A DNA stretch of 64,000 nucleotides from Macrostomum lignano (lineage: Eukaryota): the NCBI GenBank assembly GCA_002269645.1, contig NIVC01000303.1:186001-250000 (forward strand), read 5' to 3'. Positions 1 through 36,692 of the stretch are shown here, in pieces; within the stretch, counting starts at the first letter, position 1, and each line of letters starts with the position of its first letter. The notes under the pieces were generated by a model. It searched no databases and was not told where the DNA came from. It saw nothing but the letters and a program-made list of their open reading frames with translations. Made by a program: the position numbers and the translations under genes.

Positions 1-2070
1 AAGATCCGCCCCAATCTAAGAAGATCCGCCCCCAATCTAAGAAGATCCGCCCCCAATCTAAGAAGATCCGCCCCTAATCTAAGAATATCCGCCCCAATCT
101 AAGAAAATCCGCCCCAATCTAAGAAGATCCGCCCCAATCTAAGAAGATCCGACCCCAATCTAAGAAGATCCGCCCCCAATCTGAGAAGATCCGTGCCAAT
201 CTAAGAAGATCCGCCCCAATCTAAGAAGATCCGCCCCAATCTGAGAAGATCCGCCCCAAATCTGAGAAGATCCGCCCCAAATCTAAGAAGATCCGCCCCC
301 AATCTAAGAAGATCTAAGAAAATCCGCCCCAATCTAAGAAAATCCGTCCCAATCTAAGAAGATCCGACCCAATCTAAGAAGATCCGCCCCAATCTAAGAA
401 AATCCGTCCCAATCTAAGAAGATCCGACCCAATCTAAGAAGATCCGCCCCAATCTAAGAAGATCCGCCCCAATCTAAGAAGATCCGCCCCAATCTAAGAA
501 GATCCGCCCCCAATCTAGGAAGATCCCCCCCCAATCTAAGAAGATCCGCCCCAATCTAAGAAGATCCGCCCCAATCTAAGAAGATCCGCCCCCAATCTAA
601 GAAGATCTGCCCCCAATCTAAGAAGATCCGCCCCTAATCTAAGAATATCCGCCCCAATCTAAGAAAATCCGCCCCAATCTAAGAAGATCCGCCCCTATCT
701 AAGAAGATCCGACCCAATCTGAGAAGATCCGCCCCAATCTAAGAAGATCCGCCCCAATCTGAGAAGATCCGCCCCAATCTAAGAAGATCCGACCCCAATC
801 TAAGAAGATCCGCCCCCAATCTAAGAAAATCCGCCCCAATCTAAGAAAATCCGCCCCAATCTAAGAAGATCCGCCCCAATCTAAGAAGATCCGCCCCCAA
901 TCTAAGAAGGTCCGCCCCCAATCTAAGAAGATCCCCCCCCAATCTAAGAAGATCCGCCCCAATCTAAGAAGATCCGCCCCAATCTAAGAAGATCCACCCC
1001 AATCTAAGAAGATCCCCCCCCAATCTAAGAAGATCCGCCCCAATCTAAGAAGATCCGCCCCAATCTAAGAAGATCCCCCCCCAATCTAAGAAGATCCGCC
1101 CCAATCTAAGAAGATCCGCCCCAATCTAAGAAGATCCGCCCCAATCTAAGAAGATCCGCCCCAATCTGAGAAGATCCGCCCCAATCTAAGAAGATCCGCC
1201 CCAATCTGAGAAGATCCGCCCCAATCTGAGAAGATCCGCCCCAATCTAAGAAAATCCGCCCCAATCTGAGAAGATCCGCCCCAATCTGAGAAGATCCGCC
1301 CCCAATCTAAGAAGATCCGCCCCCAATCTAAGAAGATCCGCCCCCAATCTAAGAAGATCCGCCCCTAATCTAAGAATATCCGCCCCAATCTAAGAAGATC
1401 CGCCCCAATCTAAGAAGATCCGCCCCAATCTAAGAAGATCCGACCCAATCTGAGAAGATCCGCCCCAATCTAAGAAGATCCGCCCCAATCTGAGAAGATC
1501 CGCCCCAAATCTAAGAAGATCCGCCCCCAATCTAAGAAGATCTAAGAAAATCCGCCCCAATCTAAGAAAATCCGCCCCAATCTAAGAAGATCCGCCCCAA
1601 TCTAAGAAGATCCGCCCCAATCTAAGAAGATCCGCCCCCAATCTAAGAAGATCCGCCCCAATCTAAGAAGATCCGCCCCCAATCTAGGAAGATCCGCCCC
1701 TATTCTAAGAATATCCGCCCCAATCTAAGAAGATCCGCCCCCCCAATCTGAGAAGATCCGCCCCCCCAATCTGAGAAGATCCGCCTCCCCCCTATCTCAG
1801 AAGATCCGCCCCCCCCATCTCAGAAGATCCGCCCCCCCATCTCAGAAGATCCGCCCCCCATCTCAGAAGATCCGCCCCCCCCCATCTCAGAAGATCCGCC
1901 CCCCATCTCAGAAGATCCGCCCCCCCCCATCTCAGAAGATCCGCCCCCCCATCTCAGAAGATCCGCCCCCCATCTCAGAAGATCCGCCCCCCATCTCAGA
2001 AGATCCGCCCCCAATCTGAGCAGATCCGCCCCAATCTGGAAAATCCGCCCCCAACCTGACAAATCCGCCG
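1..2070. repeat. Minisatellite, ~20-21 bp unit AAGAAGATCCGCCCCAATCT (runs off the left edge)
   Basis: About 100 near-identical units read directly; C-run length varies and the unit drifts to CCCCCCATCTCAGAAGATCCG after ~1790. Confidence 0.98.
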
Positions 2071-2489
2071 AATACCCTGGGAAAATCTGTCATTTATCTT
2101 AAGGATTCCGACTAAATCGCTTAATACGCTGAATCCCCATCATCTCATCATCAGTAGGAATCAGAGTCTACCTGACCAATTCCTTTAGCCTCAAGTTTAA
2201 TATATCAGAGGCAACTTGGAAAATTCGAACCCTGACACGTTGAAATCGTAATATATCAGGTTGGAAAATTTCAGCATATCGACACTAGCGGCCATCTACA
2301 GCTTGCACCTGGCTCTCTTTTAGACCCCTTTCTAGAATATAATTACTTCTTCGCGAAGGTTGCACGTTGTGTGTGTGTCTTTCAATAATAGAGCTAGCGA
2401 AATATTTTATTATAAACACCTGAGTGCAGGTGCGCAGCAAGGGGCAGGGAGGCGAGGGGGGGCGCCCCCCACAATAGGCTGGTTAAAAG

Positions 2490-3150
2490 TTAGGACGCCT
2501 CTTGTTGCTGGCGCCCCTTGGTGCTGGCGCCCCTTGGTGCTCTGGCGCCCCTTGGTGTTCTGGCGCCCCTTGGTGCTGGCGCCACTTGGTGCTGGCGCCC
2601 CTTGGTGCTCTGGCGCCCCTTGGTGCTCTGGTGCCCCTTGGTGCTCTGGCACCCCTTGGTGTTCTGGCGCCCCTTGGTGCTCTGGCGCCCCTTGGTGCTC
2701 TGGCGCCCCTTGGTGCTGGCGCCACTTGGTGCTGGCGCCCCTTGATGCTCTGGCGCCCCTTGGTGCTCTGGCGCCCCTTGGTGCTCTGGTGCCCCTTGGT
2801 GCTCTGGCACCCCTTGGTGTTCTGGCGCCCCTTGGTGCTCTGGCGCCCTTGGTGCTCTGGCGCCCTTGGTGCTCTGGTGCCCCTTGGTGCTCTGGCACCC
2901 CTTGGTGTTCTGGCGCCCCTTGGTGCTCTGGCGCCCTTGGTGCTCTGGCGCCCTTGGTGCTCTGGTGCCCCTTGGTGCTCTGGCACCCCTTGGTGTTCTG
3001 GCGCCCCTTGGTGCTCTGGCGCCCTTGGTGCTCTGGCGCCCTTGGTGCTCTGGCGCCCTTGGTGCTCTGGCGCCCTTGGTGCTCTGGCGCCCCTTGGTGC
3101 TCTGGCACCCCTTGCTGCTCTGGCGCCCCTTGGTGCTCTGGCGCCCCAAC
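2490..3150. repeat. GC-rich minisatellite, 17-18 bp unit CTCTGGCGCCCCTTGGTG
   Basis: Tandem units read directly; the ORFs in all six frames (GAPWCS/GAPEHQ) are repeat translations. Confidence 0.97.
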
Positions 3151-3559
3151 GATTCTTCCCAATCGAAAAACCTGCCTATGGCCCAATGCAATCACACTTG
3201 CAGCCTTCGTTATGCATACTTAAATCGATTTAATTATTGTACACTCGCAGAAACTATCAAAGCAACAATTGCATCTTGGCTACACATTCATTAGAGATTG
3301 GTTATATTAATCAATGTCAGTCAAAAATGAAGCTATAGCAGTTTCCGATGGCGTGTAGGGTTCAGAATGATTCAAGAATGCTGGGAAGGAGATTGCAATG
3401 AAAGATGATGGCGCATCGACGATGGTACCTGGCATATATAGGCAGATATGAAAATATGCAGCTTTGACAGTTGAAAAACAGACTGCAGTTGGGTTAATAT
3501 CAGTATGTATCAATAGTAATTAAACAGGTACATCATTTTGGAAAGTCTGTGATAATAAA

Positions 3560-4415
3560 GTAGATACAGTCATAATAGAGTAGATACAGTGAGAATAGAG
3601 AAGATCAACAGTGAGAATAGAGAAGAGACAATGAGAATAGAGAAGATCAACAAGTGAGAATAGAGGAGACAGTGAGAATAGAGAAGATCAACAGTGAGAA
3701 TAGAGAAGATCGACAGTGAGAATAGAGAAGATGCAGTAAGAATAGAGAAGAGACAATGAGAATAGAGAAGATCGACAGTGAGAATAGAGAAGAGACAGTG
3801 AGAATAGAGAATATGCAGTAAGAATAGAGTAGAGACAGTGAGAATAGAGAAGAGAAAATGAAAATAGAGAAGATCGACAGTGAGAATAGAGAAGATGCAG
3901 TAAGAATAGAGAAGAGACAATGAGAATAGAGAAGATCAACAGTGAGAATAGAGTAGAGACAGTGAGAAGAGAGTAGAGACAGTGAGAAGAGAGTAGAGAC
4001 AGTGAGAAGAGAGTAGAGACAGTGAGAAGAGAGCAGAGACAGTGAGAATAGAGAAGATCAACAGTGAGAAGAGAGTAGAGACAGTGAGAAGAGAGTAGAG
4101 ACAGTGAGAATAGAGACGAGACAGTGAGAATAGAGAAGATCAACAGTGAGAAGAGAGTAGAGACAGTGAGAAGAGAGTAGAGACAGTGAGAAGAGAGTAG
4201 AGACAGTGAGAAGAGAGTAGAGACAGTGAGAAGAGAGCAGAGACAGTGAGAATAGAGAAGATCAACAGTGAGAAGAGAGTAGAGACAGTGAGAAGAGAGT
4301 AGAGACAGTGAGAATAGAGACGAGACAGTGAGAATAGAGAAGATCAACAGTGAGAAGAGAGTAGAGACAGTGAGAAGAGAGCAGAGACAGTGAGAATAGT
4401 GAAGAGAAAACATGA
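3560..4415. repeat. Purine-rich minisatellite, 20-22 bp units (GAGAATAGAGAAGAGACAGT variants)
   Basis: Tandem units with interleaved variants, read directly. Confidence 0.96.
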
Positions 4416-4507
4416 GAAAAGACTCAATGAGTCAGTCTAACTCCAAAACAAACTCTCAACCACACTAAACACAGATTTTCAACGGACAAACGGACTCAGA
4501 AGACGCC

Positions 4508-4936
4508 ATGCCACCAATCTATTCAAGCCAATCTATGAATGGCAGCTCAAAGTCTTTGACGAATAACCATCAACAGCTCAGTGACCGTGCTCACTTGATG
4601 CAACCGCCGCCACCGCCACCGCCGCTGTACCCCATGGAGCATCACGAGCATCAGCTGTTGCAACCAGACTTACTCGCATGCCATCAGCTGCACGAACAGC
4701 CTCATCAAACCGGCTACTTCTGTCCAGAGCCGTCTACAGCTGCCGCCTCTATGGAGCAACCATTCTACTATCAGAATCAGCCTCAGAATGAGTTACATCC
4801 TGCTGACTTTTATCAGGATGCACCATTCGAGTATCACAGTCTGTACGATTCCTCTGTTGTGTCGGGTTCTTGTCAGCAGCAGCAGCAGCATCATCAAGGA
4901 TTAAATTATTTTGATCCAACATCCGTCGCCTTTTCT
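4508..4936 (+). CDS. da: E-protein (daughterless/TCF4-like) bHLH gene, first coding exon (Q/P/H-rich)
   Basis: ATG at 4508; 429 nt ending at GTAAGT donor (4937), phase 0, in frame with downstream exons leading to the bHLH. An in-frame AG acceptor at 4473-4474 means the true start could lie upstream. Confidence 0.75.
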
Positions 4937-4969
4937 GTAAGTTTCTTTCCGGGAAGGAAGGAGTGAATA

Positions 4970-5450
4970 TTTACTGTTTACAGTGACTATTTACACTTTA
5001 GAGTGACTATTTACACTTTAGAGTGACCATTTACTGTTTAGAGTGACTATTTAATGTTTAGAGTGACTGTTTACTGTTTAGAGTGATTATTTACTGTTTA
5101 GAGTGACTGTTTACTGTTTAGAGTGACTATTTACTGTTTAGAGTGATTATTTACTGTTTAGAGTGACTGTTTACTGTTTAGAGTGACTATTTACTGTTTA
5201 GAGTGACTATTTAATGTTTAGAGTGACTGTTTACTGTTTAGAGTGATTATTTACTGTTTAGAGTGACTGTTTACTGTTTAGAGTGACTATTTACTATTTG
5301 GAGTGACTATTTACACTTTAGAGTGACTATTTACTGTTTAGAGTGACTATTTACTGTTCGGAGTGAAACTTAAAGACTATTTACTGCTTAGAGTGACTGT
5401 TTACTGTTTAGAGTGACTATTTACTGTTTAGAGTGACATTTGAAAGTTTT
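4970..5450. repeat. Intronic minisatellite, 20 bp GAGTGACTATTTACTGTTTA
   Basis: About 22 tandem units inside intron 4937-5490. Confidence 0.96.
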
Positions 5451-5490
5451 GAGTGACGTTGAGTACATATTGCACTTTTTCTTAATCCAG

Positions 5491-5541
5491 GATCCAGCTA
5501 GGTCGGATTTCTATGCTTATCAGCAGCACTACTATCAGCAG
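5491..5541 (+). CDS. da: E-protein exon 2 (DPARSDFYAYQQHYYQQ)
   Basis: TTTTTCTTAATCCAG acceptor, 51 nt, GTGAG donor; phase 0/0; Q/Y content matches flanking exons. Confidence 0.75.
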
Positions 5542-5599
5542 GTGAGGTCTCCCCTCTTAAGTCGCATTCGTTCACCTTATATGAACTTTTAGGTCTAAA

Positions 5600-7622
5600 A
5601 ATCTCCCTCGTTCCAAATCTCCCTCATTCCAAATCTCTATCATTCCAAATATCTCATTCCAAATCTCTCTCATTCCAAATTTCTCATTCCGAATCTCTCT
5701 CATTCCAAATCTCCCTGTTTCCTAATCCTTCATTCCAAATCTCCCTCATTCCAAATCTCTCTCATTCCAAATCTCCTTCATTCCTAATCCTTCATTCCAA
5801 ATCTCCCACATTCCAAATCTCTCTCATTCCAAATCTCTCATTCCAAATCTCTCATTCCAAATCTCTCATTCCAAATCTCTCATTCCAAATCTCTCTCATT
5901 CCAAATTTCTCATTCCAAATCTCCCTCATTCCAAATCTCCCTCATTCCAAATCTCCCTCATTCCAAATCTCCTTCATTCCAAATCTCCTTCATTCCAAAT
6001 CTCCTTCATTCTAAATCTCTCATTCCAAATCTCCCTCATTCCAAATCTCCCTCATTCCAAATCTCCCTCATTCCAAATCTCCCTCATTCCAAATCTCCTT
6101 CATTCCAAATCTCCTTCATTCCAAATCTCTCATTCCAAATCTCCCTCATTCCAAATCTCTCATTCCAAATCTCTCATTCCAAATCTCTCATTCCAAATCT
6201 CTCTCATTCCAAATCTCCCTCATTCCAAATCTCCCTCATTCCAAATCTCCCTCATTCCAAATCTCCCTCATTCCAAATCTCCTTCATTCCAAATCTCCTT
6301 CATTCCAAATCTCCTTCATTCCAAATCTCCTTCATTCCAAATCTCCTTCATTCCAAATCTCTCATTCCAAATCTCCCTCATTCCAAATCTCCCTCATTCC
6401 AAATCTCCCTCATTCCAAATCTCCCTCATTCCAAATCTCCCTCATTCCAAATCTCCCTCATTCCAAATCTCCTTCATTCCAAATCTCCTTCATTCCAAAT
6501 CTCCTTCATTCCAAATCTCTCATTCCAAATCTCCCTCATTCCAAATCTCCCTCATTCCAAATCTCCCTCATTCCAAATCTCCCTCATTCCAAATCTCCCT
6601 CATTCCAAATCTCCCTCATTCCAAATCTCCCTCATTCCAAATCTCCCTCATTCCAAATCTCCCTCATTCCAAATCTCCCTCATTCCAAATCTCCCTCATT
6701 CCAAATCTCCCTCATTCCAAATCTCCCTCATTCCAAATCTCCCTCATTCCAAATCTCCCTCATTCCAAATCTCCCTCATTCCAAATCTCCCTCATTCCAA
6801 ATCTCCCTCATTCCAAATCTCCCTCATTCCAAATCTCCCTCATTCCAAATCTCCCTCATTCCAAATCTCCCTCATTCCAAATCTCCTTCATTCCAAATCT
6901 CTCATTCCAAATCTCCCTCATTCCAAATCTCTCATTCCAAATCTCTCATTCCAAATCTCTCATTCCAAATCTCTCTCATTCCAAATTTCTCATTCCAAAT
7001 CTCCCTCATTCCAAATCTCCCTCATTCCAAATCTCCCTCATTCCAAATCTCCTTCATTCCAAATCTCCTTCATTCCAAATCTCCTTCATTCCAAATCTCC
7101 TTCATTCCAAATCTCCTTCATTCCAAATCTCTCATTCCAAATCTCCCTCATTCCAAATCTCCCTCATTCCAAATCTCCCTCATTCCAAATCTCCTTCATT
7201 CCAAATCTCCTTCATTCCAAATCTCCTTCATTCCAAATCTCCTTCATTCCAAATCTCCTTCATTCCAAATCTCCTTCATTCCAAATCTCCCTCATTCCAA
7301 ATCTCCCTCATTCCAAATCTCCCTCATTCCAAATCTCCCTCATTCCAAATCTCCCTCATTCCAAATCTCCCTCATTCCAAATCTCCCTCATTCCAAATCT
7401 CCCTCATTCCAAATCTCCCTCATTCCAAATCTCCCTCATTCCAAATCTCCCTCATTCCAAATCTCCCTCATTCCAAATCTCCCTCATTCCAAATCTCCCT
7501 CATTCCAAATCTCCCTCATTCCAAATCTCCCTCATTCCAAATCTCCCTCATTCCAAATCTCCCTCATTCCAAATCTCCCTCATTCCAAATCTCCCTCATT
7601 CCAAGTCATCCTCATTCCAAAT
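5600..7622. repeat. Intronic minisatellite, 14/16 bp CATTCCAAATCTC(CC)T
   Basis: About 2 kb of tandem units filling intron 5542-7643 up to ~20 nt before the acceptor. Confidence 0.98.
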
Positions 7623-7643
7623 CGCCTCACCCTACTTCCCCAG

Positions 7644-8311
7644 CAACAGCACCATTTGCCGCCGGCACCTCCGCTGCCGCCACAGCCACCGCAGCTGGTG
7701 GACTCGCAAGTCGCTCAGCCTCCTCCACCATCTCTACGGCCGCAGCCGCAGCCGCAGCCTCAACCGCGGCAGTCAGCGAAGCGACCTGCAAACCCCGCCA
7801 CTGCCGCGGCTCCTCCGATCGCCAAACCGACAGCCAGCCGGCCAAAATCGGCCAAGCCATCGCAGTCGAACAAACAGCAGCAAGCTGTCCAAGCGTCCAG
7901 CCTCGATCCCTCGACATCGTCCACGAAGTCTTCGAAAAACTCGACGCCCCAGTCGGTTCCGCTGCCCAAGCCGAAGCCGTTGCCTAGCAACGGTTACGAG
8001 CGTCGACGCCGACTACTTGCCGATATTAGTCGAACGACAACTGATTCGGCTGCGGAAACTTTTGCCGGCTGCAACAAGGCGCAGCAGCAGAAGAGAGCCG
8101 GCAAGAAGAGGCCGAGCCAAGCTGGCGACTCCACAAGCGACAACCTCAGCGACAATAACGACGCTGACCGACTTGGTAGCGACATGGACGACGACATGGC
8201 CGACGAGGATGCTGAGGACGATGAAGAGGACGAGGACGATGCCAATTTGACTCCGGAGGAGAAGCTGATGCGAGAGAAGGCGCGCCGGCACGCCAACAAT
8301 GCCAGGGAGAG
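7644..8311 (+). CDS. da: E-protein exon 3: P/Q/S-rich region, acidic patch and bHLH basic region (EKARRHANNARER)
   Basis: CCCCAG acceptor, phase 0; ends ...ANNARE-AG|GTGAG (phase 2). LTPEEK..REK.RR.ANNARER is the E-protein signature. Confidence 0.93.
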
Positions 8312-8479
8312 GTGAGGCGGATCTCTCTCCGGGTTGGAAATGCTTTTCAATGTTTCAATATCTTTGCCAAAGTTTCGCTGGGAGATGAACGCAATCTCAA
8401 AAAGATTGAATCATCGGATCAATAATGGATGGGAAGAATTTCCTTTAGTAGGGGAATTCTCCCTAATTGGATGAGATGA

Positions 8480-10030
8480 TTCTTCTCAATCAGATGGAAT
8501 CATCTCACCCCCCAATCAGATGGAAAGATTCCTCCTCAATCGCATGGAAAGATTCCTCCCCAATCAGATGGAAAGATTCCTCCCCAATCAGATGGAAATA
8601 TTCCTCCCCAATCAGATGGAAATATTCCTCCCCAATCAGATGGAAAGATTCCTCCCCAATCAGATGGAAATATTCCTCCCCAATCAGGTGGAAAGATTCC
8701 TCCCCAATCAGATGGAAAGATTCCTCCCCAATCAGATGGAAATATTCCTCCCCAATCAGATGGAAAGACTCCTCCCCAATCAGGTGGAAACATTCCTCCC
8801 CAATCAGATGGAAATATTCCTCCCCAATCAGATGGAAAGATTCCTCCCCAATCAGGTGGAAACATTCGTCCCCAATCAGATGGAAAGATTCCTCCCCAAT
8901 CAGGTGGAAACATTCCTCCCCAATCAGGTGGAAACATTCCTCCCCAATCAGATGGAAAGATTCCTCCCCAATCAGGTGGAAACATTCCTCCCCAATCAGG
9001 TGGAAACATTCCTCCCCAATCAGATGGAAATATTCCTCCCCAATCAGATGGAAAGATTCCTCCCCAATCAGGTGGAAACATTCGTCCCCAATCAGATGGA
9101 AAGATTCCTCCCCAATCAGGTGAAAAGATTCCTCCCCAATCAGGTGGAAATATTCCTCCCCAATCAGATGGAAATATTCCTCCCCAATCAGATGGATGAT
9201 TCCTCCCCAATCAGGTGGAAAGATTCCTCCCCAATCAGGTGGAAACATTCCTCCCCAATCAGCTGGAAAGATTCCCCTCAATCAGATGGAAAGATTCCTC
9301 CCCAATCAGATGGAAATATTCCTCCCCAATCAGGTGGAAATATTCCTCCCCAATCAGATGGAAATATTCCTCCCCAATCAGATGGATGATTCCTCCCCAA
9401 TCAGGTGGAAAGATTCCTCCCCAATCAGGTGGAAACATTCCTCCCCAATCAGCTGGAAAGATTCCCCTCAATCAGATGGAAAGATTCCTCCCCAATCAGA
9501 TGGAAATATTCCTCCCCAATCAGATGGAAAGATTCCCCTCAATCAGATGGAAATATTCCTCCCCAATCAGATGGAAAGATTCCTCCCCAATAAGATGGAA
9601 AGATTCCTCCCCAATCAGGTGGAAACATTCCTCCCCAATCAGGTGGAAACATTCCCCTCAATCAGATGGAAATATTCCTCCCCAATCAGATGGAAACATT
9701 CCTCCCCAATCAGATGGAAAGATTCCCCCCTCAATCAGATGGAAATATTCCTCCCCAATCAGATGGAAAGATTCCCCTCAATCAGATAGAAATATTCCTC
9801 CCCAATCAGATGGAAAGATTCCTCCCCAATCAGATGGAAACATTCCTCCCCAATCAGATGGAAAGATTCCCCCCTCAATCAGATGGAAATATTCCTCCCC
9901 AATCAGATGGAAAGATTCCTCCCCAATCAGGTGGAAACATTCCTCCCCAATCAGATGGAAATATTCCTCCTTAATCAGATGGAAAGATTCCCCCCAATCA
10001 GTTGGAAAGATACCCCTCAATCAGACGCAA
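8480..10030. repeat. Intronic minisatellite, 24 bp CCTCCCCAATCAGATGGAAAGATT
   Basis: Tandem units; translations WKDSSPIR / MERFLPNQ have an 8-aa period. Confidence 0.98.
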
Positions 10031-10166
10031 AGATTCTCCTCTGCAAAATAAAAGTCTTTAACTATAGGAAAATACCCCCTAATCAAACAGAGATTATCGC
10101 CGCAGATCTGTTACAGATTTTGTGTTATACAAAATTCGATAAATATAAAACGGCTCGGCCCAACAG

Positions 10167-10327
10167 GCTGCGAGTGAAAGACATCAATGACGCATTCAAA
10201 GAGCTCGGCAAGGTGGTTGACTTGCACTCGGAATTGGATAGTGGAAGCCAGCAGCCGCCTTTGACAAAACTGGCTGTCCTGCAGCAGGCGGTCAGCATCA
10301 TTGCTTCTCTGGAGCAGCAGGTTCTAG
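10167..10327 (+). CDS. da: E-protein HLH exon A (alternative): [53 protein letters not shown]
   Basis: CAACAG acceptor, 161 nt, phase 2 in / phase 1 out, GT donor at 10328; class I HLH motifs DIN.AFKELG, TKL..L.QAV, LEQQV. Confidence 0.85.
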
Positions 10328-10479
10328 GTTGTACTTTTAAACTATTCGAAAGTACAAGATGAACTCAATTGTTGCTGTGCTGTTTTGTGCCGGCTTTTGA
10401 TTTTGTTCTGGTTTATCGCTGTGTTGTTTTATGCAACGATTTCAAAACATCTGTAGCCAGCCTCGCAAATAAAGCATTG

Positions 10480-10760
10480 GAATGCATTGCTAATCTATAG
10501 CCAACCTCGCAGATAGAAGATTAGAATGGATTGCTAATCTATAGCCAACCTCATAGATAGATGATTAGAATGGATTGCTAATCTATAGCCAACCTCGCAG
10601 ATAAAGGATTAAAATGGATTTGTAATCCATAACTAACCTCGCAGATAAGGCATTACAATAGGTTGCTAATCTATAGCCAACTTCGTAGATAAAAGATTAG
10701 AATGGATTGCTAATATATAGCAAACCTCAGATAAAGAATTTAAAGGGATTGTTAATCTGC
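10480..10760. repeat. Degenerate ~42 bp tandem repeat between the two HLH exons
   Basis: About 6 copies of CTAATCTATAGCCAACCTCGCAGATA..GATTAGAATGGATTG. Confidence 0.85.
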
Positions 10761-10939
10761 TCAGACACATGTAAGGCTACATATATCGAGAGGTCGTATC
10801 CAGCCTGAATGATTAATTACCAGTTTTGGAAACATTTATTCCTTGCGTTTCCATGGTGACAGACGTTTGATGTAAATCAATCAGCTGAATTACAGCCAAA
10901 TAAATCAGAAATCGTTAAACAAAATATCGCGTTCTACAG

Positions 10940-11085
10940 GATTCGAGTTCGGGACATCAACGGCGCCTTCAAAGAGCTGGGCCGCATGACCATGATGCAT
11001 TTGAAGTGCGAGAAGCCCCAGACTAAGCTGTGCGTATTGCAACAGGCTGTGACAGTCATCACAGCGCTGGAACAGCAAGTCAGAG
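10940..11085 (+). CDS. da: E-protein HLH exon B (canonical): [48 protein letters not shown]
   Basis: TTCTACAG acceptor, 146 nt, same phases as exon A; closely matches the Daughterless/TCF4 HLH sequence. Confidence 0.93.
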
Positions 11086-11229
11086 GTTTGCCTGCGCGCG
11101 ATTCTTTATGACTTAATTGATTTTATCAGATAATTTCTCGCGGTGTGCAACATTTTGTTTTGCCGCGGTATTTGGTTTTTTATCTTCTTATCTGCAGCGT
11201 ACATTCAGTGTACCGAGACCGATTCTAGG

Positions 11230-11480
11230 GTCCAAAAATAGCCAGTTTACATTCTGTGTAGCCATAACCCTAGTTTCTAAAAATAGCTAGAGTGTACATT
11301 CAAAGCAGCCTTAACCCTAGTTTCTATAAATAGCCAGTGTGTACATTCAATGTAGCCTCAGCCCTAATTTTTTAAATAGACGCCAGAGTGTACATTCAGT
11401 GTAGCCTCAACCCTAGTTTCTAAAAATAGCCAGAGTGTACATGCGGTGAAGCATCAATCTTAGTGTCCAAAAATAGATCA
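11230..11480. repeat. Degenerate ~46 bp intronic tandem repeat
   Basis: Recurrent AAAAATAGCCAGAGTGTACATTCAGTGTAGCCTCAACCCTAGTTTCT-like units. Confidence 0.75.
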
Positions 11481-11565
11481 GAAAATTTAGGCGTAATGTA
11501 CATTCTGTTTAGCATCAAAGTTACAAAGTTATCACGACAACTATAAACCCATCTGTTCCGCTCAG

Positions 11566-11655
11566 AGCGCAATCTGAACCCCAAAGCAGCCTGTCTGAAG
11601 CGCAGGGAGGAGGAAAAATCCAGCGATCACGAGTTTCCAGGGCCTTCGGGAGAGA
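11566..11655 (+). CDS. da: E-protein post-HLH exon (ERNLNPKAACLKRREEEK...)
   Basis: CTCAG acceptor, phase 1; ERNLNPKAACLKRREEEK is the conserved E-protein C domain. Donor at 11656 or 11661. Confidence 0.93.
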
Positions 11656-12019
11656 GTAAGGTAAGACAGCCGGGTCATTAAACGCAATTCAATGGAATGT
11701 ATTGGGAACAATATTTTCTACGATGTGCCCGATATCATACTAACATCAATTATGCTTTGTTCATTTCAGAATCCATTTCGAATTTTTCTGATTTGATTGC
11801 AAAAATTTGATTTATTTCAACTCGTAATTTTTCTGAAGCTATTAGTTTTGAAGAACTGGATATTGTGTTTCTTTATTAGTAGATTTTGAATGCGGTGAAA
11901 GGTTTTTGTTTTGGAAATTTTACCATTTGTATTAGTATGATATAATATTAATACTTAATATAAAAGCCCGAACTTTTGATTTATCTATTGAATCCATCCG
12001 AAAGTAGTTTAAATAACCC

Positions 12020-12594: not shown

Positions 12595-13043
12595 ACTACT
12601 CACTAACTGGCTGTACTCAGCCTCAAGCTCAGCAACAGCTGGATAGTCAACCAATTTCCGCATTCTACAATCCAACTGAACAGCCGCCGTCACTTCGCCA
12701 GCAGCCGCATTTCCAGGAAAGCCACAACAGCGCGGTGGCTGCTCAGCAGTACCTAATGTACTTTACTACTAACAGTAGCAATCAGCATTGCCAGCAACCA
12801 GATGAACAGCAGCCGCAAACAATGCCAACTAGAAATAGAATCGACGCCACAATATCCGAAGCTATTGGCCAGCCATTCGATAATGCCCCAACCGATCAAG
12901 TGGCAGCAGTAGCAGCAGAAGCAGAAGATTCCACAGCAGCAGCTCTTGGCTTCAGTGCCGACGAGTTTTTGATGCCGCATCCGGAGCCGTTGAGACCGGA
13001 TGTTGAGAATGCTGGCGGCATTGCTGGCCGCCATGATTCCTAG
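12595..13043 (+). CDS. da: E-protein terminal exon (Q/A-rich tail, stop TAG 13041-13043)
   Basis: CCTTCCAG acceptor; open to 13043 in phase 1, matching the 11656 donor; composition like the other exons. Confidence 0.7.
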
Positions 13044-13200: not shown

Positions 13201-14027
13201 GATTATCATATAGCATATTCTAAAAGTATATTGCACCTCGACTGAAAATTACTGCATAAAATCCTGCAGATTATCACAATCTGCCGATATGTATCGATGC
13301 ATAATAAAACAATGTTGTGTATCATAGTAACTCCTAAATTCAAAAAAGTGAAGTGGCTGCTTTTGGCAATACTCCAACAGGAATGTAAATAGACTCGTGT
13401 TAATAAAAACATCTCTCAAAAATGGCCCTCTGATTCTTGAGGCTCATTGTTTGATCCAATGTTAGTTTCGCGAGCATTCAGAGCTGCGACCATAAGAGAT
13501 TTGCGTTCGCAGCCGATATGTATCGAAATATAAGTTTTTCGTGCTTTACCGTGATCCAACCCTACAGTACGTCATTTACTTAACATGATTTTATTCATTG
13601 AGCTGATTAATATTAACTGTTCATGCTACTCGTATAAACCTATTTCATATTTAATAATTGCCATTTCAAACCCATTTATTCTCGTACTGTTAAAAATTAA
13701 TGACTTGATAAAACTGCATAAAATTAATCCTGCTCTGCATGCAATGTACTACTCATTCATTAAACAGCCTATTTCTCTTTTGAAAAAAAAACTGCAAAAC
13801 TCTGGCACTGCGCGTTTGACAGCACAAAATTTATGCTTGCACAGAAACTGTAAACAGGTTGTGCTCGTCAGATTGATTTTTCTGTCACATGGAGCTATCG
13901 TCATTCTGATAACATGTTGCTGACCTTTTCACTAATAAATCATTTTCACTGGCAAAAATCTTTTAAGTTTCTTACTGCCTTCTGACTAACTCAAATACAG
14001 CACTCACGACGGATTACGAGTAACTCC

Positions 14028-16340
14028 TGTGCCTCTCCCTGTGCCTCTCCCTGTGTCTCTCCCTGTGCCTCTCCCTGTGCCTCTCCCTGTGCCTCTCCCT
14101 GTGTCTCTCCCTGTGCCTCTCCCTGTGTCTCTCCCTGTGTCTCTCCCTGTGCCTCTCCCTGTGTCTCTCCCTGTGTCTCTCCCTGTGCCTCTCCCTGTGT
14201 CTCTCCCTGTGCCTCTCCCTGTGTCTCTCCATTTGTTTCTCCCTGTGTCTCTTCATTTGTCTCTCCCTGTGTCTCTCCCTGTGTCTCTCCCTGTGCCTCT
14301 CCCTGTGTCTCTCCCTGTGTCTCTCCCTGTGCCTCCCCCTGTGCCTCTCCCTGTGCCTCTCCCTGTGTCTCTCCCTGTGCCTCCCCCTGTGTCTCTCCCT
14401 GTGCCTCTCCCTGTGCCTCCCCCTGTGTCTCTCCCTGTGCCTCTCCCTGTGTCTCTCCCTGTGCCTCTCCCTGTGTCTCTCCCTTATCTCTCCCTGTGCC
14501 TCTCCCTGTGCCTCTCCCTGTGCCTCTCCCTGTGCCTCTCCCTGTGCCTCTCCCTGTGCCTCTCCCTGTGTCTCTCCCTGTGCCTCTCCCTGTGTCTCTC
14601 CCTGTGCCTCTCCCTGTGTCTCTCCCTTATCTCTCCCTGTGCCTCTCCCTGTGCCTCTCCCTGTGCCTTTCCCTGTGCCTCTCCCTGTGTCTCTCCCTGT
14701 GCCTCTCCCTGTGTCTCTCCCTGTGCCTCTCCCTGTGTCTCTCCCTTATCTCTCCCTGTGCCTCTCCCTGTGTCTCTCCCTTATCTCTCCCTGTGCCTCT
14801 CCCTGTGCCTCTCCCTGTGCCTCTCCCTGTGCCTCTCCCTGTGCCTCTCCCTGTGCCTCTCCCTGTGTCTCTCCCTGTGTCTCTCCCTGTGCCTCTCCCT
14901 GTGTCTCTCCCTGTGCCTCTCCCTGTGTCTCTCCCTTATCTCTCCCTGTGCCTCTCCCTGTGCCTCTCCCTGTGCCTTTCCCTGTGCCTCTCCCTGTGTC
15001 TCTCCCTGTGCCTCTCCCTGTGTCTCTCCCTGTGCCTCTCCCTGTGTCTCTCCCTTATCTCTCCCTGTGCCTCTCCCTGTGCCTCTCCCTTATCTCTCCC
15101 TGTGTCTCTCCCTGTGTCTCTCCCTGTGTCTCTTCCTGTGTCTCTTCTTGTGTCTCTCCATGTGTCTCTCCCTGTGTCTCTCCCTGTGTCTCTTCCTGTG
15201 TCTCTTCCTGTGTCTCTTCCTGTGTCTCTCCCTGTGTCTCTTCCTGTGTCTCTCCCTGTGTCTCTCCCTGTGTCTCTCCATTTGTCTCTCCCTGTGTCTC
15301 TCCCTGTGTCTCTCCCTGTGTCTCTCCATTTGTCTCTTCCTGTGTCTCTTCCTGTGTCTCTCCCTGTGTCTCTCCCTGTGTCTCTCCCTGTGTCTCTACC
15401 TGTGTCTCTCCATGTGTCTCTCCCTGTGTCTCTCCATTTGTCTCTCCCTGTGTCTCTCCCTGTGTCTCGATCCATGTGTCTCTCCCTGTGTCTCTCCATT
15501 TGTCTCTCCCTGTGTCTCTTCCTGTGTCTCTCCCTGTGTCTCTCCCTGTGTCTCTCCATTTGTCTCTCCCTGTGTCTCTCCCTGTGTCTCTCCCTGTGTC
15601 TCTCCCTGTGTCTCTCCCTGTGTCTCTCCCTGTGTCTCTCCCTGTGTCTCTTCCTGTGTCTCTTCTTGTGTCTCTCCATGTGTCTCTCCCTGTGTCTCTC
15701 CCTGTGTCTCTCCCTGTGTCTCTCCCTGTGTCTCTCCCTGTGTCTCTCCCTGTGTCTCTTCCTGTGTCTCTTCTTGTGTCTCTCCATGTGTCTCTCCCTG
15801 TGTCTCTCCCTGTGTCTCTCCCTGTGTCTCTCCATGTGTCTCTTTCTGTGTCTCTCCATTTGTCTCCCCCTGTGTCTCTCCCTGTGTCTCTCCCTGTGTC
15901 TCTCCCTGTGTCTCTCCCTGTGTCTCTCCCTGTGTCTCTCCCTGTGTCTCTCCCTGTGTCTCTCCCTGTGTCTCTCCCTGTGTCTCTCCCTGTGTCTCTC
16001 CCTGTGTCTCTTCCTGTGTCTCTTCTTGTGTCTCTCCATGTGTCTCTCCCTGTGTCTCTCCCTGTGTCTCTCCCTGTGTCTCTCCATGTGTCTCTTTCTG
16101 TGTCTCTCCATTTGTCTCCCCCTGTGTCTCTCCCTGTGTCTCTCCCTGTGTCTCTCCCTGTGTCTCTCCCTGTGTCTCTCCCTGTGTCTCTCCCTGTGCC
16201 TCTCCCTGTGCCTCTCCCTGTGTCTCTCCCTGTGTCTCTTCCTGTGTCTCTTCTTGTGTCTCTCCATTTGTCTCTCTCTTTGTCTCTCCCTGTGTGTCTC
16301 TTCACCCTCCCTGGTGTCTCTCCCACCTCCCTGGTGTCTC
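14028..16340. repeat. Minisatellite, 12 bp CCTGTG(C/T)CTCTC
   Basis: About 190 units with a C-to-T variant gradient left to right; the long ORFs are repeat translations. Confidence 0.98.
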
Positions 16341-16510: not shown

Positions 16511-18238
16511 TCAGCTTATTAGCTGATAAAAGAGGGATTCACAGCTGAACACCTGCAGTCTGCTGTTGCCATAGTAAGATACAATCAGCTGCTCGCGCGG
16601 ACCTCCCGTCACCACCGCCAGACCCAATGGAACGTTGAATCTGCCGTCTTCACTGCCGCTCTCGCCCGGAGTCCCCAGAGTCCACAGCAGCGACCCGTCG
16701 TCTGCAGCCACAGCACGCACTGAGTGACCAGCGAAATCACTCACGAACAGGCGGCCTCTGCTGTCGACGGCCACACCCCTTGGATAAGCAAACTGTTGGA
16801 GACCGGTACGCTGAGTCGGGAAGGAGGCGACCAGCTGCTGGGTGTCGATGCGCACTCTGTGCACCTGATTGTGCATCCTGTCTGTCACCAAAATGCAGTT
16901 GTCGTGAGTCGCCAGGTTACCCAGTGCAGCATGAGGAAGCTGAGACAGCGTGATGACCGTCTCCATCTGCCAAGTCGCTTTGCTGAATGCAGCAATTTGG
17001 TTTCCACTGGACACAAACACGGAGGCTGCGTTGCCGCCGATTCCCATGATGTCACCGAAGCCCTCGATGTGTGGGCGGACTCAACGCACCGCGCGACCGC
17101 TCAGGTCCGTCACTGTCACTGCCTCAGACTGAGCAATGAACAGCAGCTGACGGTCGCAGTGAAGGCCACAGATGTACTTCTTCCAGTCAATGTCGCAGTG
17201 ACACCGCAGCTTCTGTGAGCCGTCCACAGACAGCACCAGTAGGTGGTCTCTGTTCAGACAAAATGATGCAAGGATGCAGGGTTGAGGCAGAGCCTCGCTG
17301 CCGTCTCCCGCTGAGTCGGCGGGAACCACACGGCCTGAGCGGTCACGAACGAATCCGCTTGTGTCGCTGCACACAGCCAGCCATGCAGCATCGCCATCCA
17401 GCTTCACCTCGTGACTGAAGACCATGGGCTTAAAAATTCTCTCTCTCTGAGCAGCTATATCTCTGTCTATCTCCTCGGATGTCGCGGTCACCGCAGCGTC
17501 TCTCGACCAGTCGCCCTCTTCACTGCGTCCCGCACAAATGCTGACCAGCCGCTCGAGCTGGGCCAGAAGCCGCAGCTGCAGCTCCTCATTGTCGCTCTGG
17601 TCTCTGAGCAGGCGCTCTGACCTCTCAAAGTCGGCCTCCAAGTCTCCAAGCGATTCGTGCATGGACTGGACCAGGCGAAGCAGCTCCGCCATGTCGCCTG
17701 CAGCCTCCGCCGTGGCCACCTCCTGCTTGTAGCTGGAGACGTCCTCGAGGTCCCGCTCGCACACACGCACTGTCTCAAGCACACCTGAGAGCTGGCCCGT
17801 CACCCTGCTACGAAAAGAGTCGATGTGTTGCTGTACCAAATCGAATTTGTGATTGACCTCTTGCAGCTGCTGTTGGATGTCGAGAGCGAGACGACGCAGC
17901 GACTCAGCGTCTTGTCTTGGTCGCAGCAGCTCTGCACGGCCAGCTGCACCTTCTGCGCCTTGTGACTCTTGTGACTCTTGTGACTCTTGTGACTCTTGTG
18001 ACTCTTGTGACTCTTGTGACTCTTGTGACTCTTGTGAGTAGGCACGCAGCAGCTCTTCGACCTCCTCCTTGAGCTTGAATAGATTGGCCACATCGACACT
18101 GAGGTGTTGACTGCACATGTGGCTGCGGGAGAACGAAGCCACACCGACTGCAGCTTGGTCGCAGATGATGCAGAGAGGAGTTGGGGTAGCGGCAGGCGCT
18201 TCCGAACTCGAGCTGTCGCTGGAGTCTCTGAGGCTCAT
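16511..18238 (-). pseudogene. B-box-like/coiled-coil/NHL-repeat protein, copy 1, in-frame TGA at 17081-17083
   Basis: Paralogous to 23861-25663 and 33324-35114. ORFs 17081-18238 and 16511-17047 are in the same frame, split by one TGA (CGA in copy 2, CAA in copy 3). Also a Cys-to-Ser change in the Zn motif. Confidence 0.8.
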
Positions 18239-19529: not shown

Positions 19530-20250
19530 TCAAAATTTCGCAAGCAAAGCTCGGCAAGCAAACTTCGGCAAGCAAAGTTAGGCAAGCAAAATTCCTGCAA
19601 GCAAAGCTCGGCAAGCAAAGTTCGGCAAGCAAAATTCTGCAAGCAAAGCTCGGCAAGCAAAGTTCGGCAAGCAAAATTCCTGCAAGCAAAGTTCGGCAAG
19701 CAAAGTTCGGCAAGCAAAGTTCGGCAAGCAAAATTCTGCAAGCAAAGCTCGGCAAGCAAAGTTCGGCAAGCAAAGTTCGGCAAGCAAAGTTCGGCAAGCA
19801 AAATTCTGCAAGCAAAGCTCGGCAAGCAAAGTTCGGCAAGCAAAATTCCTGCAAGCAAAGTTCGGCAAGCAAAGTTCGGCAAGCAAAGTTCGGCAAGCAA
19901 AATTCTGCAAGCAAAGTTCGGCAAGAAAAGTTCGGCAAGCAAAGTTCGGCAAGCAAAGTTCGGCAAGCAAAGTTCGGCAAGCAAAATTCTGCAAGCAAAG
20001 TTCGGCAAGCAAAGTTCGGCAAGCAAAGTTCGGCAAGCAAAATTCTGCAAGCAAAGTTCGGCAAGCAAAGTTCGGCAAGCAAAGTTCGGCAAGCAAAGTT
20101 CGGCAAGCAAAGTTCGGCAAGCAAAGCTCGGCAAGCAAAGTTCGGCAAGCAAAGTTCGGCAAGCAAAGTTCGGCAAGCAAAGTTCGGCAAGCAAAGTTCG
20201 GCAAGCAAAGTTCGGCAAGCAAAGTTCGGCAAGCAAACTTCCCGCAAGCA
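19530..20250. repeat. Minisatellite, 14 bp GCAAGCAAAGTTCG with variants
   Basis: About 50 units; 14-aa period in translations. Confidence 0.97.
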
Positions 20251-20399
20251 AACGTCGTACTCCCCTGAGTGCCTGCACAAAATCTGTGTCCACGTGGACG
20301 GGACACTGAACGACACCCGGGTAGAAGTCGCAGTTGCTCATAGTGACGACTTCCTCTGAGTCAGCTCGGCATTGAAGTCTGCGGTTTGCCGATGGTCTC

Positions 20400-23860: not shown

Positions 23861-25663
23861 TTAGGAAGCACTGAACACCTGCAGTCTCCTGTTGCCAAAG
23901 TCAGCCACCACCAGCTGCTCGCGCGGACCTCCCGTCACCACCGCCAGACCCGATGGATGCCTGAATCGCCTGTCTTGGCTGTCTCCGCTGCCGCTCTCGC
24001 CCGGAGTCCCCTGAGTCCACAGCAGCGACCCGTCGTCTGCAGCCACCGCTCGCACTGAGTGGCCATCATTTTCACTCACGAACAGGCCGCCTCTGCTGTC
24101 GACGGCCACATCAATTGGACCAGCAAACTGTTGAAGGCCGGAACGCTGAGTCGGGAAGGAGGCGACCAGCTGCTGTGTGTCGATGCGCACTCTGTGCACC
24201 TGATTGGGCTGACAGTCTATCACAAGAATGCAGTTGTCGTGAGTCGCTAAGTTACGCAGATCAGCACGAGGCAGCTGAGACAGCGTGATGACCGTCTCCA
24301 TCTGCCAAGTCGCTTTGCTGAATGCAGCAATTTTGTTTCCACTGGACACAAACACGGAGGCTGCGTTGCCGCCAATTCCACTGATGTCCCCGAAGCCCTC
24401 GATGTGTGGGCGGACTCGATGCACCTTGCGACCGCTCAGGTCCGTCACTGTCACTGCGTCAGACTGAGCAATGAACAGCAGCTGACGGTCGCAGTGAAGG
24501 CCACAGATGTACTTCTTCCAGTTGATGTTGCAGTGGCACCGCAGCTTTTGTGAGCCGTCCACAGACAGCACCAGTAGGTGGGCCTTGTTAAAAAGGAATG
24601 ATGCCAGAATGCAGGGCTGAGGCAGAGCCTCGCTACCGTCTTCCGCTGAGTCGGCGGGAACCACCAGGCCCGAGCAGTCACCAACGAATCCGCTGGTGTC
24701 GCTGCACACAGCCAGCCATGTAACAAGGCCATACAGCTCCACCTCGTAACTGAAGACCATCGGATCGAACAGCAGTCTGTGAGCCGCGTCTATCTCCTCG
24801 GATGTCGCGGTCACCGCAGCGTCCTTGGCCCACTCATCCTCTTCACTGCGTCCCGCACAAATGCCGACCAGCCGCTCGAGCTGGCCCAGAAGCCGCAGCT
24901 GCAGCTCCTCATTGTCGCTCTGGTCTCTGAGCAGGCGCTCTGACCTCTCAAAGTCGGCCTCCAAGTCTCCAAGCGATTCGTGCATGGACTGGACCAGGCG
25001 AAGCAGCTCCGCCATGTCGCCTGCAGCCTCCGCCGTGGCCACCTCCTGCTTGTAGCTGGAGACGTCCTCGAGGTCCCGCTCGCACACACGCACTGCCTCA
25101 AGCACACCTGAGAGCTGGCCCGTCACCCTGCTACGAAACGAGTCGATGTGTTGCTGTACCAAATCGAATTTGTGATTGACCTCTTGCAGCTGCTGTTGGA
25201 TGTCGAGAGCGAGACGACGCAGCGACTCAGCGTCTTGTCGGTGTCGCAGCAGCGCTGCTCGGCCAGCTGCACTTGCTGCGCCTTGTGACTCTTGTGACTC
25301 TTGTGGCTCTTGTGAGTCTTGTGACTCTTGTGGCTCTTGTGACTCTTGTGAGTCTTGTGAGTCTTGTGGCTCTTGTGAGTTTTGTGAGTCTTGTGAGTCT
25401 TGTGGCTCTTGTGACTCTTGTGACTCTTGTGTGTCTTGTGAGTCTTTTGAGTCTTTTGAGTAGGCACGCAGCAGCTCTTCGACCTCCTCCTTGAGCTTGA
25501 ATAGATTGGCCACATCGACACTGAGGTGTTGACTGCACATGTGGCAGCGGGAGAACGGAGCCACACCGACTGCAGCTTGGTCGCAGATGATGCAGAGTTG
25601 GGGAGTTGGGGTAGCGGGAGGCGCGTCAGAACTCGAGCTGTCGCTGGAGTCTCCAAGGCTCAT
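23861..25663 (-). CDS. B-box-like/coiled-coil/NHL-repeat (TRIM-NHL-like, RING-less) protein, copy 2
   Basis: Intronless ORF, likely start MSLGDSS at 25663; CIIC..CHMCSQH Zn motif, (S/T/P)Q(E/D) repeat, long coiled coil, NHL motifs (F..P.DVAVDSRG.LFVS; F.HP.GLAV..LVVADFGN.RLQVF). Confidence 0.85.
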   Translation of the reverse strand: MSLGDSSDSSSSDAPPATPTPQLCIICDQAAVGVAPFSRCHMCSQHLSVDVANLFKLKEEVEELLRAYSKDSKDSQDTQESQESQEPQDSQDSQNSQEPQDSQDSQESQEPQESQDSQEPQESQESQGAASAAGRAALLRHRQDAESLRRLALDIQQQLQEVNHKFDLVQQHIDSFRSRVTGQLSGVLEAVRVCERDLEDVSSYKQEVATAEAAGDMAELLRLVQSMHESLGDLEADFERSERLLRDQSDNEELQLRLLGQLERLVGICAGRSEEDEWAKDAAVTATSEEIDAAHRLLFDPMVFSYEVELYGLVTWLAVCSDTSGFVGDCSGLVVPADSAEDGSEALPQPCILASFLFNKAHLLVLSVDGSQKLRCHCNINWKKYICGLHCDRQLLFIAQSDAVTVTDLSGRKVHRVRPHIEGFGDISGIGGNAASVFVSSGNKIAAFSKATWQMETVITLSQLPRADLRNLATHDNCILVIDCQPNQVHRVRIDTQQLVASFPTQRSGLQQFAGPIDVAVDSRGGLFVSENDGHSVRAVAADDGSLLWTQGTPGESGSGDSQDRRFRHPSGLAVVTGGPREQLVVADFGNRRLQVFSAS

Positions 25664-26149
25664 TGCTGCACGGCAGGTCTTTAATTTTATTTTGTTTAAA
25701 AGCAAAAACTGAATTTTCGCACTGGGCTGCCTTTTAAGTATGCGAGTGGCAGCAGCTGCGCATCGGTGGGGACGCACAGTTTACATTGGCACAGGGTAGG
25801 TGACTGTTCGCAGCCCAGAGTCCGCATCTGCGTGCGTGTTTGGATCTGTGCGAAGCAGAGCGAATTTGTTTATTTCTTTGCTGTGTATGTGGACTGGAAG
25901 ATTGGCTCAGCGATTCACTCAGCGATTCTTGTTCATTGACATATTCATGGTCTTTCTAGACGCCGTTTAGTATTGAGTAACAATGCTTTTGCGGCTCATT
26001 GTTTGATTGTCTGTAAGGAGCTGAAATGCAGATGAAGTTTAAAAAAATTGCATTAAGAGGTGCTATGTACTCGTAAGTTGAAAATCATTCAAAAGAATTG
26101 AGGAGAGGAAGAAGAAAGATAGAGGAGCAGATAAAGAGGGAGTAGAGAG

Positions 26150-35114: not shown

Positions 35115-35949
35115 TGTTGGATTGTCTGAGAAGAGCATAAATGCAGTTAAAATGAACGCAGTGAGAGATAGAGAAGAGAGGGAGAAGGGAGGGAGAAAAG
35201 GGAGAAGAGGCAATTAAGTCGAAGCCTTGAAGCCTCAAGCTCAAGTGAGAAATGGAGAAGAGAGGGTAGGAGGGAGAGCTGCCCAGCCCAGTGCTGCAGT
35301 GCCAGTGACTGACACACCACCACAAGTCCTGCTTGCACGAGACACCCTCATCGCACAGGCCAGTCACCCACTAAAGACCGCTCAGTGGAGACCTGGTTTG
35401 ACCTTGCAATGTACCACTCAAATGAGAAAAATGAACTACAAACCGGCAGGTCAGAAGAGTTTTGTGCAAACTTAAAATTACTGGAAATTATTGGGATGAA
35501 AATTAGCGAGACGAGCGCTGATTGCATGTTTATTTGTTACTAAGGAGTTAATTACGATTATTAAATTAATTCATTAAGTATAAAAAATAAACGTACAAAA
35601 TAGCTTTATTTTGGGTTTAAAAATGCTTTAATATTTTGCATAAATAAAAATGCCATTTAAGCAGAAATAAATAGCAGAGTAAATTAGAGAAGCAGACAAA
35701 TGCGGTTACCATAGCAACATAACAGTAATTTTAGCACCATATGGTAGCCGGAGTTGCAGAGCGGCTTCAGTGGATATAACAGTTGACAGTGCAAAATAAG
35801 ACTGATTGGAAATGCAGTGCAGAGTAAGTTTATTATCATAATTAAATTAGCATAAATTATTGCATGGATAAACAGGAGCATGCGGGACTGCACTACTCAA
35901 CTGGTTTGAGTAGTAGAGATGAAATGAAACTGAAACAGCTGAGATTGAT

Positions 35950-36692
35950 TGAGACAGATTGAGAGTGACATATGGAGTGAGAGCCACACAGATTGAGAGT
36001 GAGATATGGAGTGAGAATCACACAGATTGAGAGTGAGATAAGGAGTGAGTCACACAGATTGAGAGTGAGATATGGAGTGAGTCACACAGATTGAGAGTGA
36101 CATATGGAGTGAGAGCCACACAGATTGAGAGTGAGATATGGAGTGAGAATCACACAGATTGAGAGTGAGATAAGGAGTGAGTCACACAGATTGAGAGTGA
36201 GATATGGAGTGAGTCACACAGATTGAGAGTGAGATATGGAGTGAGAGTCACACAGATTGAGAGTGAGATATGGAGTGACAGTCACACAGATTGAGAGTGA
36301 GATATGGAGTGAGAGTCACACAGATTGAGAGTGAGATATGGAGTGACAGTCACACAGATTGAGAGTGAGATATGGAGTGACAGTCACACAGATTGAGAGT
36401 GAGATATGGAGTGAGAGTCACACAAATTGAGAGTGAGATATGGAGTGACAGTCACACAGATTGAGAGTGAGATATGGAGTGAGAGTCACACAGATTGAGA
36501 GTGAGATATGGAGTGAGAGTCACACAGATTGAGAGTGAGATATGGAGTGACAGTCACACAGATTGAGAGTGAGATATGGAGTGAGAGTCACACAGGTTGA
36601 GAGTGAGATATGGAGTGAGAGTCACACAGATTGAGAGTGAGATATGGAGTGACAGTCACACAGATTGAGAGTGAGATATGGAGTGAGAGTCA
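35950..36692. repeat. Minisatellite, 32-34 bp GAGTGAGATATGGAGTGAGAGTCACACAGATTGA
   Basis: About 22 units ending ~80 nt past the RRM2 stop. Confidence 0.96.

Follow-up and report, generated by a model that had tools for sequence, protein, structure and literature searches.

A probable pair of ancient, mutually exclusive helix-loop-helix exons in an E-protein gene of the flatworm Macrostomum lignano

Background

Nearly all tissue-specific bHLH factors, among them the proneural, myogenic and Twist/Hand proteins, have E-proteins as their obligatory partners; E-proteins are also targeted by Id/Emc inhibitors, and invertebrates are usually regarded as having one E-protein partner. We considered a 64,000-nucleotide stretch of Macrostomum lignano DNA, referred to below as the window, in which the exon encoding the basic, DNA-contacting region of such a gene is followed by two homologous exons, A and B, each encoding a helix1-loop-helix2 module. 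This locus raises the question of whether the two exons are alternatives of which every transcript receives one and, if so, how old such an arrangement would be. As set out below, we regard A and B as cassette exons that probably form an ancient, mutually exclusive pair in the M. lignano class I bHLH (E-protein/daughterless/TCF3-4-12) gene.

Exon structure of the locus

The features of the window, and those of the loci compared with it, are collected in Table 1. The acceptor of the shared upstream exon at 7643/7644 (ccccAG/CAACAG, the slash marking the splice boundary) agrees with the start of the public model P0142 (QQHHLPP..), and its phase 2 donor (GCC AGG GAG AG/gtgagg) closes an exon encoding ..ANNARE and two bases of an Arg codon. 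Exon A lies between the acceptor ..cccaacAG/G and the donor CTAG/GTtgta and encodes 53 residues after the split (R), and exon B lies between ..ttctacAG/G and AGAG/GTttgc and encodes 48 residues after the split (R); the splice sites of both exons are weak. The shared downstream exon (acceptor ..ccgctcAG/AG CGC AAT CTG, giving ERNL..) opens on AG CGC AAT CTG, so that the final G of either cassette completes the GAG codon for the E of ERNLNPKAAC. Its donor (AAG/gtaaga) is in phase 0, the alternative being read-on to a stop at 11678.

The first-pass annotation had described two homologous HLH exons of 161 and 146 nt, bounded by AG/GT, entered in phase 2 and left in phase 1. Our recomputation reproduced this description to the base, and the junction coordinates proposed with it (8311, 10167, 10327, 10940, 11085, 11566) all match the recomputed boundaries. 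It had also claimed that only one cassette is usable at once, and translation of the joins bears this out. The lengths of both exons are 2 mod 3 and their splice phases are the same, as recomputed from the sequence, so that double inclusion and double skipping alike lead to a premature stop: A joined to B meets a stop 18 codons into B, and 8311 joined to 11566 is frameshifted and stops at the end of exon 11566-11660.

Towards the 3' end, the exon at 12621..13043 is tentatively taken as the last coding exon, having no homology support. At the other end, a motif scan of all forward frames of positions 1-8400 found neither the LH motif (..LDDAI.VLR.HA..) nor AD1, and the 5' part of the gene therefore probably lies outside the window, upstream.

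Long minisatellite arrays are unusually abundant in the window, with periods of 12-47 nt and up to 190 copies, and each intron flanking the HLH exons holds one. Among the neighbouring genes, each of the NHL-repeat paralogs carries an SQE/SQD repeat encoded by 9-nt CTTGTGACT arrays, and the first copy is broken into two ORFs (16511-17047 and 17081-18238) and is a possible pseudogene.

Table 1. Positions of features in the window and of HLH exons at E-protein loci of other animals (each in the coordinates of its own sequence)
Feature	Positions	Strand	Remarks
Shared upstream coding exon	7644..8311	+	Pro/Gln-rich region, acidic stretch, basic (DNA-contacting) region ..EEKLMREKARRHANNARE(R)
Intron 1	8312..10166	+	mostly a 24-nt minisatellite at 8487-10036, about 65 copies
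Exon A, alternative HLH	10167..10327	+	161 nt; A-type ('PLTKL') helix1-loop-helix2, loop 5 residues longer than usual
A-B intron	10328..10939	+	612 nt; 44-nt repeat array at 10449-10758
Exon B, alternative HLH	10940..11085	+	146 nt; canonical B-type ('KPQTKL') helix1-loop-helix2
Intron 3' of exon B	11086..11565	+	47-nt repeat array at 11234-11476
Shared downstream exon	11566..11660	+	encodes (E)RNLNPKAACLKRREEEKSSDHEFPGPSGESK, the E-protein signature C-terminal to helix 2
Last coding exon (tentative)	12621..13043	+	PQAQQQLDSQ...GRHDS and stop, phase 0, 3' of an actaac branch-point-like motif
Minisatellite arrays, first five	1-2051, 2508-3147, 3549-4407, 5599-7623, 8487-10036		
Minisatellite arrays, remaining six	10449-10758, 11234-11476, 14026-16300, 19540-20252, 35954-36692, 59493-61526		
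Three tandem paralogous genes with C-terminal NHL repeats	16511-18238, 23861-25777, 33324-35213	-	apparently intronless
Ribonucleotide reductase small subunit gene	36771-37979	-	intronless; Pfam 386 bits
Nuclear-receptor ligand-binding-domain exon	41524-42324	-	
Succinate dehydrogenase cytochrome b subunit gene	58358-58951	+	intronless
Cichlidogyrus casuarinus, monogenean (L008)	A 1173-1318, B 1380-1525		both 146 nt, AG/GT, 61 nt apart
Heterobilharzia americana, schistosomatid (L005, OX104127.1)	A 10778-10922, B 11232-11377		A 145 nt
Capitella teleta, annelid (L003, KB294417.1)	10293-10438, 11141-11292, 11549-11694		146, 152 and 146 nt
Homarus americanus, lobster (L001)	62483-62628, 62911-63056		both 146 nt
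Lottia (L002)			single HLH exon
Limulus (L004)			single HLH exon

Protein family of the two isoforms

The peptides of exons A and B share 55% identity (BLASTP, E=6e-20). Against the Pfam HLH profile PF00010 (cutoff 20.7 bits), the spliced isoform A scores 49.4 bits and the spliced isoform B 42.9 bits, and each isoform can be aligned over its whole length with solved bHLH structures of E2A/TCF4, the full-length alignments to the E2A chains 8UBK and 2YPA scoring 101-120 bits; these alignments place the 5 extra residues of exon A in the HLH loop. The E-protein basic region ..RR.ANNARER is present and the tail ERNLNPKAACLKRREEEK follows helix 2 directly. As the best database matches are exclusively TCF4, TCF12, E2A and daughterless, the gene is assigned to the class I bHLH E-proteins. 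The two cassettes differ in helix 1, loop and helix 2, and the basic region and both flanks are common to them.

Distribution of the exon pair in other animals

The genomic loci of relatives were fetched and their HLH-like exons located by tblastn. The multiple HLH exons of Cichlidogyrus, Heterobilharzia, Capitella and Homarus were thereby confirmed in genomic DNA, flanked by AG/GT and in phases equal to those of the window. At all six loci tabulated, the upstream exon ends in ..ANNARE/R in phase 2 and the downstream exon starts with ERNLNPK. The intron after ANNARER is an old invertebrate intron, found also in Lottia and Limulus, and no special trait of the M. lignano gene. A survey of E-protein/daughterless relatives for duplicated HLH exons, which the first-pass annotation had suggested, recovered pairs in flatworms, annelids and crustaceans. 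The accompanying idea of an origin confined to this lineage does not survive, since a second M. lignano gene has the A/B pair too, as do Cichlidogyrus, Heterobilharzia and Schistosoma rodhaini and the annelids Capitella and Lamellibrachia.

Among flatworms, the second M. lignano E-protein gene (P0128) is strongly diverged and carries an A-like and then a B-like module behind one basic region. The A-B intron of Cichlidogyrus (1319-1379, 61 nt) may be short enough to hinder splicing of A to B, giving steric exclusivity. Exon A of Heterobilharzia has a 1-nt deletion in a run of T (about 10800-10812) and is otherwise nearly identical to the intact A exons of S. rodhaini and Protopolystoma; the deletion may reflect a fault in the assembly or a loss that is very recent. 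For S. rodhaini there are models whose last exon is an intact A and another that begins at B, and the Protopolystoma protein model has A only.

In annelids, the three tandem HLH exons of Capitella all have AG/GT sites and the same phases, and the JGI model takes the third of them only (B). The tubeworm Lamellibrachia has A and B within one protein model, and the annotated proteins of Ridgeia and Dimorphilus have A spliced directly to ERNLNPK. The protein models of Amphibalanus, Darwinula, Hyalella and one further arthropod-like protein have two modules behind one basic motif, and at the protein level the insect sequences retrieved carry only the second-exon (daughterless) type. ORFs P0458 and P0473 run on across a short intron from one tandem HLH exon into the next and indicate a further lineage with the arrangement. 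Two other candidates, Popillia P0129 and Scophthalmus P0121, contain two complete and identical bHLH copies, probably assembly or model duplications, and were set aside.

Selection and use of the two exons

Comparing the monogenean with the digenean (Cichlidogyrus against Heterobilharzia), exon A is identical at 43/48 amino acids and 16/48 third codon positions and exon B at 44/48 amino acids and 22/48 third codon positions; such high protein identity alongside low identity at third positions marks purifying selection on both exons, which is strong on the A-type exons. For exon A of the window against that of Cichlidogyrus, conservation is likewise highest at codon position 2, then 1, then 3 (41/33/19 of 48). 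Exon B of the window is 46/49 identical to the B of its M. lignano paralog and 38/48 to neodermatan B exons. Exon A of the window is 36/49 identical to the A of the paralog, its rate of evolution being about four times that of B. Of the A-type copies examined it has diverged furthest, with a 15-nt insertion in the loop and a final Leu replacing an invariant Arg.

Spliced transcripts are available for oysters, as two Logan contigs, L006 (SRR24489175) and L007 (SRR11285563), one of which clusters with Magallana gigas A0A8W8NY20. The encoded proteins are identical at 275/285 positions. Of 50 differences in the CDS, 37 fall inside the 146-nt HLH exon, starting from its first base, and most are synonymous. 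This is the pattern expected of two alternative exons of one gene and shows, at the transcript level, alternative use in a spiralian; it suggests that the A-type exon was duplicated a second time, specifically in bivalves. For M. lignano itself, the protein collections searched contained no transcript of either isoform, nor was there one among the proteins recovered by the short-query homologue search, which returned proteins <190 aa only. Two M. lignano-like models, P0366 (from the basic exon to A) and P0365 (from B to the tail), each contain a frameshift and were not counted as evidence of expression.

It might be supposed that exon A of this gene copy is an unused, slowly decaying relic and that B alone is spliced here, the A/B pair being functional elsewhere. 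The insertion, the terminal Leu and the lower identity of A than of B to the paralog would fit such a decay, as would the lack of transcript evidence in the collections searched, and gene duplication could have relaxed the constraint on one copy. We nevertheless consider it unlikely. The ORF of exon A is intact, both its splice sites are kept and its length remains 2 mod 3. The inserted nucleotides, a multiple of 3 in number, fall within the loop, a region tolerant of variation in length; the hydrophobic HLH core is retained, the Pfam score of the exon A isoform exceeds that of B, and the codon-position pattern is typical of coding sequence. Moreover, the M. lignano paralogs are old, with strongly diverged flanks, so that a neutral exon should already be disrupted.

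Exon types and origin of the duplication

Neighbour-joining (NJ) trees were built from the HLH modules, whose roughly 49 residues each carry limited phylogenetic signal. According to these trees, exon A belongs to an A-type clade (bootstrap 74 and 69 with ~49 residues) with the signature ..QPLTKLM(V/I)LQQAV.., composed of the A exons of both M. lignano genes, the first exons of schistosomatids, the monogenean and annelids, and the HLH exon of molluscs (the sole one of Lottia). B-type exons (..KPQTKL..) fall outside this clade; the two M. lignano B exons pair together (bootstrap 80-83) and neodermatan B exons form a group of their own (bootstrap 74). The second exons of Pancrustacea cluster tightly with insect daughterless (bootstrap 97-99), and the first exons of crustaceans are similar to those of chelicerates. 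E12, E47 and TCF4 cluster together and apart from A and B, with weak support (bootstrap 52-56, ~49 residues), which suggests a separate duplication.

From these sequences, the simplest reading is that the A/B duplication would predate the split of flatworms, annelids and molluscs and that the vertebrate duplication would be a separate event. Of the independent origin proposed in the first-pass annotation, the part concerning E12/E47 thus stays plausible, on account of the differing 5' exon boundary and the grouping in the trees, and the part concerning a novelty of this lineage falls away. A recent, local tandem duplication specific to Macrostomum would explain that the exons are adjacent and homologous, and the first-pass annotation was aware of no report in the lineage; it is nonetheless highly improbable, because A and B share only 55% identity, exon A groups with the first exons of flatworms and annelids and the mollusc exon and exon B with the B-types, and A and B recur in that order in other flatworms and in annelids.

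A more far-reaching proposal is that HLH swapping is an ancestral property of protostome (or bilaterian) E-proteins, the spiralian and pancrustacean pairs deriving from one duplication. We hold this to be possible but on the doubtful side. If it were true, invertebrates would have two or three dimerisation isoforms in place of the textbook 'single universal E-protein partner', the condition of insects, Lottia and Limulus would be due to secondary loss, and the vertebrate E12/E47 pair would re-create an older logic.

Public gene models

The sequences of the upstream exon, of exons A and B and of part of the intron all stand verbatim in model P0142 (UniRef A0A1I8FSE8, M. lignano), which is faulty. 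The exon pair is likewise mishandled in P0128, P0131, P0132, P0148, P0130, P0244, P0245 and P0241/P0243, where the two exons are fused through ad hoc joins or intron read-through, or the gene is split at the pair. Automated annotation thus fuses the exons or splits the gene, and catalogues of bHLH proteins for these phyla are wrong at this gene. That P0128, P0131, P0132, P0148 and P0244 hold both modules in one ORF might be taken to mean that both exons are included by means of shifted splice sites, giving a protein with tandem HLH modules, but the chance of this is close to negligible: the joins differ by species, are not conserved and are ad hoc or read-through, the S. rodhaini gene was split by the predictor instead, the conserved AG/GT sites break the frame in every species examined, and the oyster transcripts and the Ridgeia and Dimorphilus models hold exactly one module.

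Proposed mechanism and significance

Under the mutually exclusive reading, the activation and acidic regions, the basic region and the ERNLNPKAACLKRREEEK tail would be common to all mRNAs, each of which would receive one of two helix1-loop-helix2 modules, splicing of both exons in M. lignano being our inference. The reading frame, at least, would enforce exclusivity, aberrant products being prematurely stopped and so non-functional or degraded. The HLH being the dimer interface, the isoforms should recognise the same E-box half-site and differ in dimerisation, in at least one of homodimer stability, the choice of tissue-specific class II bHLH partners and sensitivity to Id/Emc-type inhibitors. 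A tandem exon duplication older than the divergence of flatworms, annelids and molluscs would have produced the pair, with later loss or modification: Lottia would have kept A only, oysters would have duplicated A again, and Capitella would have come to three exons.

As to how the choice between A and B might be made, a steric block is unlikely in M. lignano given the 612 nt of the A-B intron. Inverted repeats of the docking/selector kind amounted at the A/B locus to just 12-17-nt imperfect pairs, in about the number expected by chance, and no splicing regulatory element for the choice was identified at the locus.

An old and conserved switch of the dimer interface would add a hidden choice of partners in flatworms, annelids, bivalves and crustaceans, lineages that include stem-cell and regeneration models such as Macrostomum. 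It would also amount to an experiment of nature that varies the dimerisation part and leaves the DNA-reading part constant.

Comparison with known systems

The closest known system is TCF3 (E2A), whose exons 18a and 18b give rise to E12 and E47, isoforms with different dimerisation properties (PMC6795145, PMC6120717) that differ in both dimerisation and DNA binding (PMC6795145). TCF3 belongs to the same protein family, likewise has a tandem pair of homologous, mutually exclusive exons, and has the identical 3' boundary, in phase 1 after ..LEQQVR and before ERNLNPKAAC (P0125). However, each alternative exon of TCF3 encodes its own basic region and upstream residues, whereas the basic region of M. 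lignano lies in the shared exon, so that only helix1-loop-helix2 is swapped. This difference, pointed out in the first-pass annotation, is visible in the models containing both exons, which have two NN.RER motifs in vertebrates and one in invertebrates (flatworms and crustaceans). A and B do not appear to be the respective orthologs of E12 and E47, according to NJ trees of weak support on ~49 residues. The choice of TCF3 exon is governed by hnRNP H1 and PTBP1 through silencers in exon and intron, and nothing comparable was identified at the M. lignano locus.

In our full-text literature searches, no account of invertebrate E-proteins with alternative HLH exons came to light, and the pancrustacean genes with two HLH exons, present in public models, were not found in the literature searched. 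The mutually exclusive exons of Bicyclus anynana daughterless (PMC9218548) were considered and put aside, being described, in the text consulted, as newly found unannotated exons with no stated link to the HLH. The pancrustacean daughterless/E-protein genes (Homarus, Amphibalanus, Darwinula, Hyalella) resemble that of M. lignano in having a shared ANNARE/R exon, two HLH exons and ERNLNPK, both HLH exons being 146 nt with phases equal to those of M. lignano. They differ in the exon types, the first being chelicerate-like ('AF..KAQTKL') and the second of the insect daughterless type ('AL..KPQTKLGILNMAV'), and neither groups with the spiralian A-type. Crustacean proteins with two exons are P0130, P0132, P0148 and P0431.

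The COE/EBF family offers another metazoan transcription factor in which an exon encoding part of the HLH dimerisation motif is duplicated; it is a different family and, going by the title of that report, its duplicated exon is mandatorily included in vertebrates, not alternative (PMC2394523). More generally, the M. lignano pair shares with mutually exclusive exons born of tandem duplication, such as the muscle myosin heavy chain clusters (PMC3912159) and those of the human landscape (PMC5740500), neighbouring homologous exons of the same phase and compatible lengths, an ancient origin and one exon per transcript. The docking/selector RNA structures or steric constraints of such systems are not evident in M. 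lignano and, unlike these generic cases, the module exchanged here would be the one through which a hub transcription factor dimerises.
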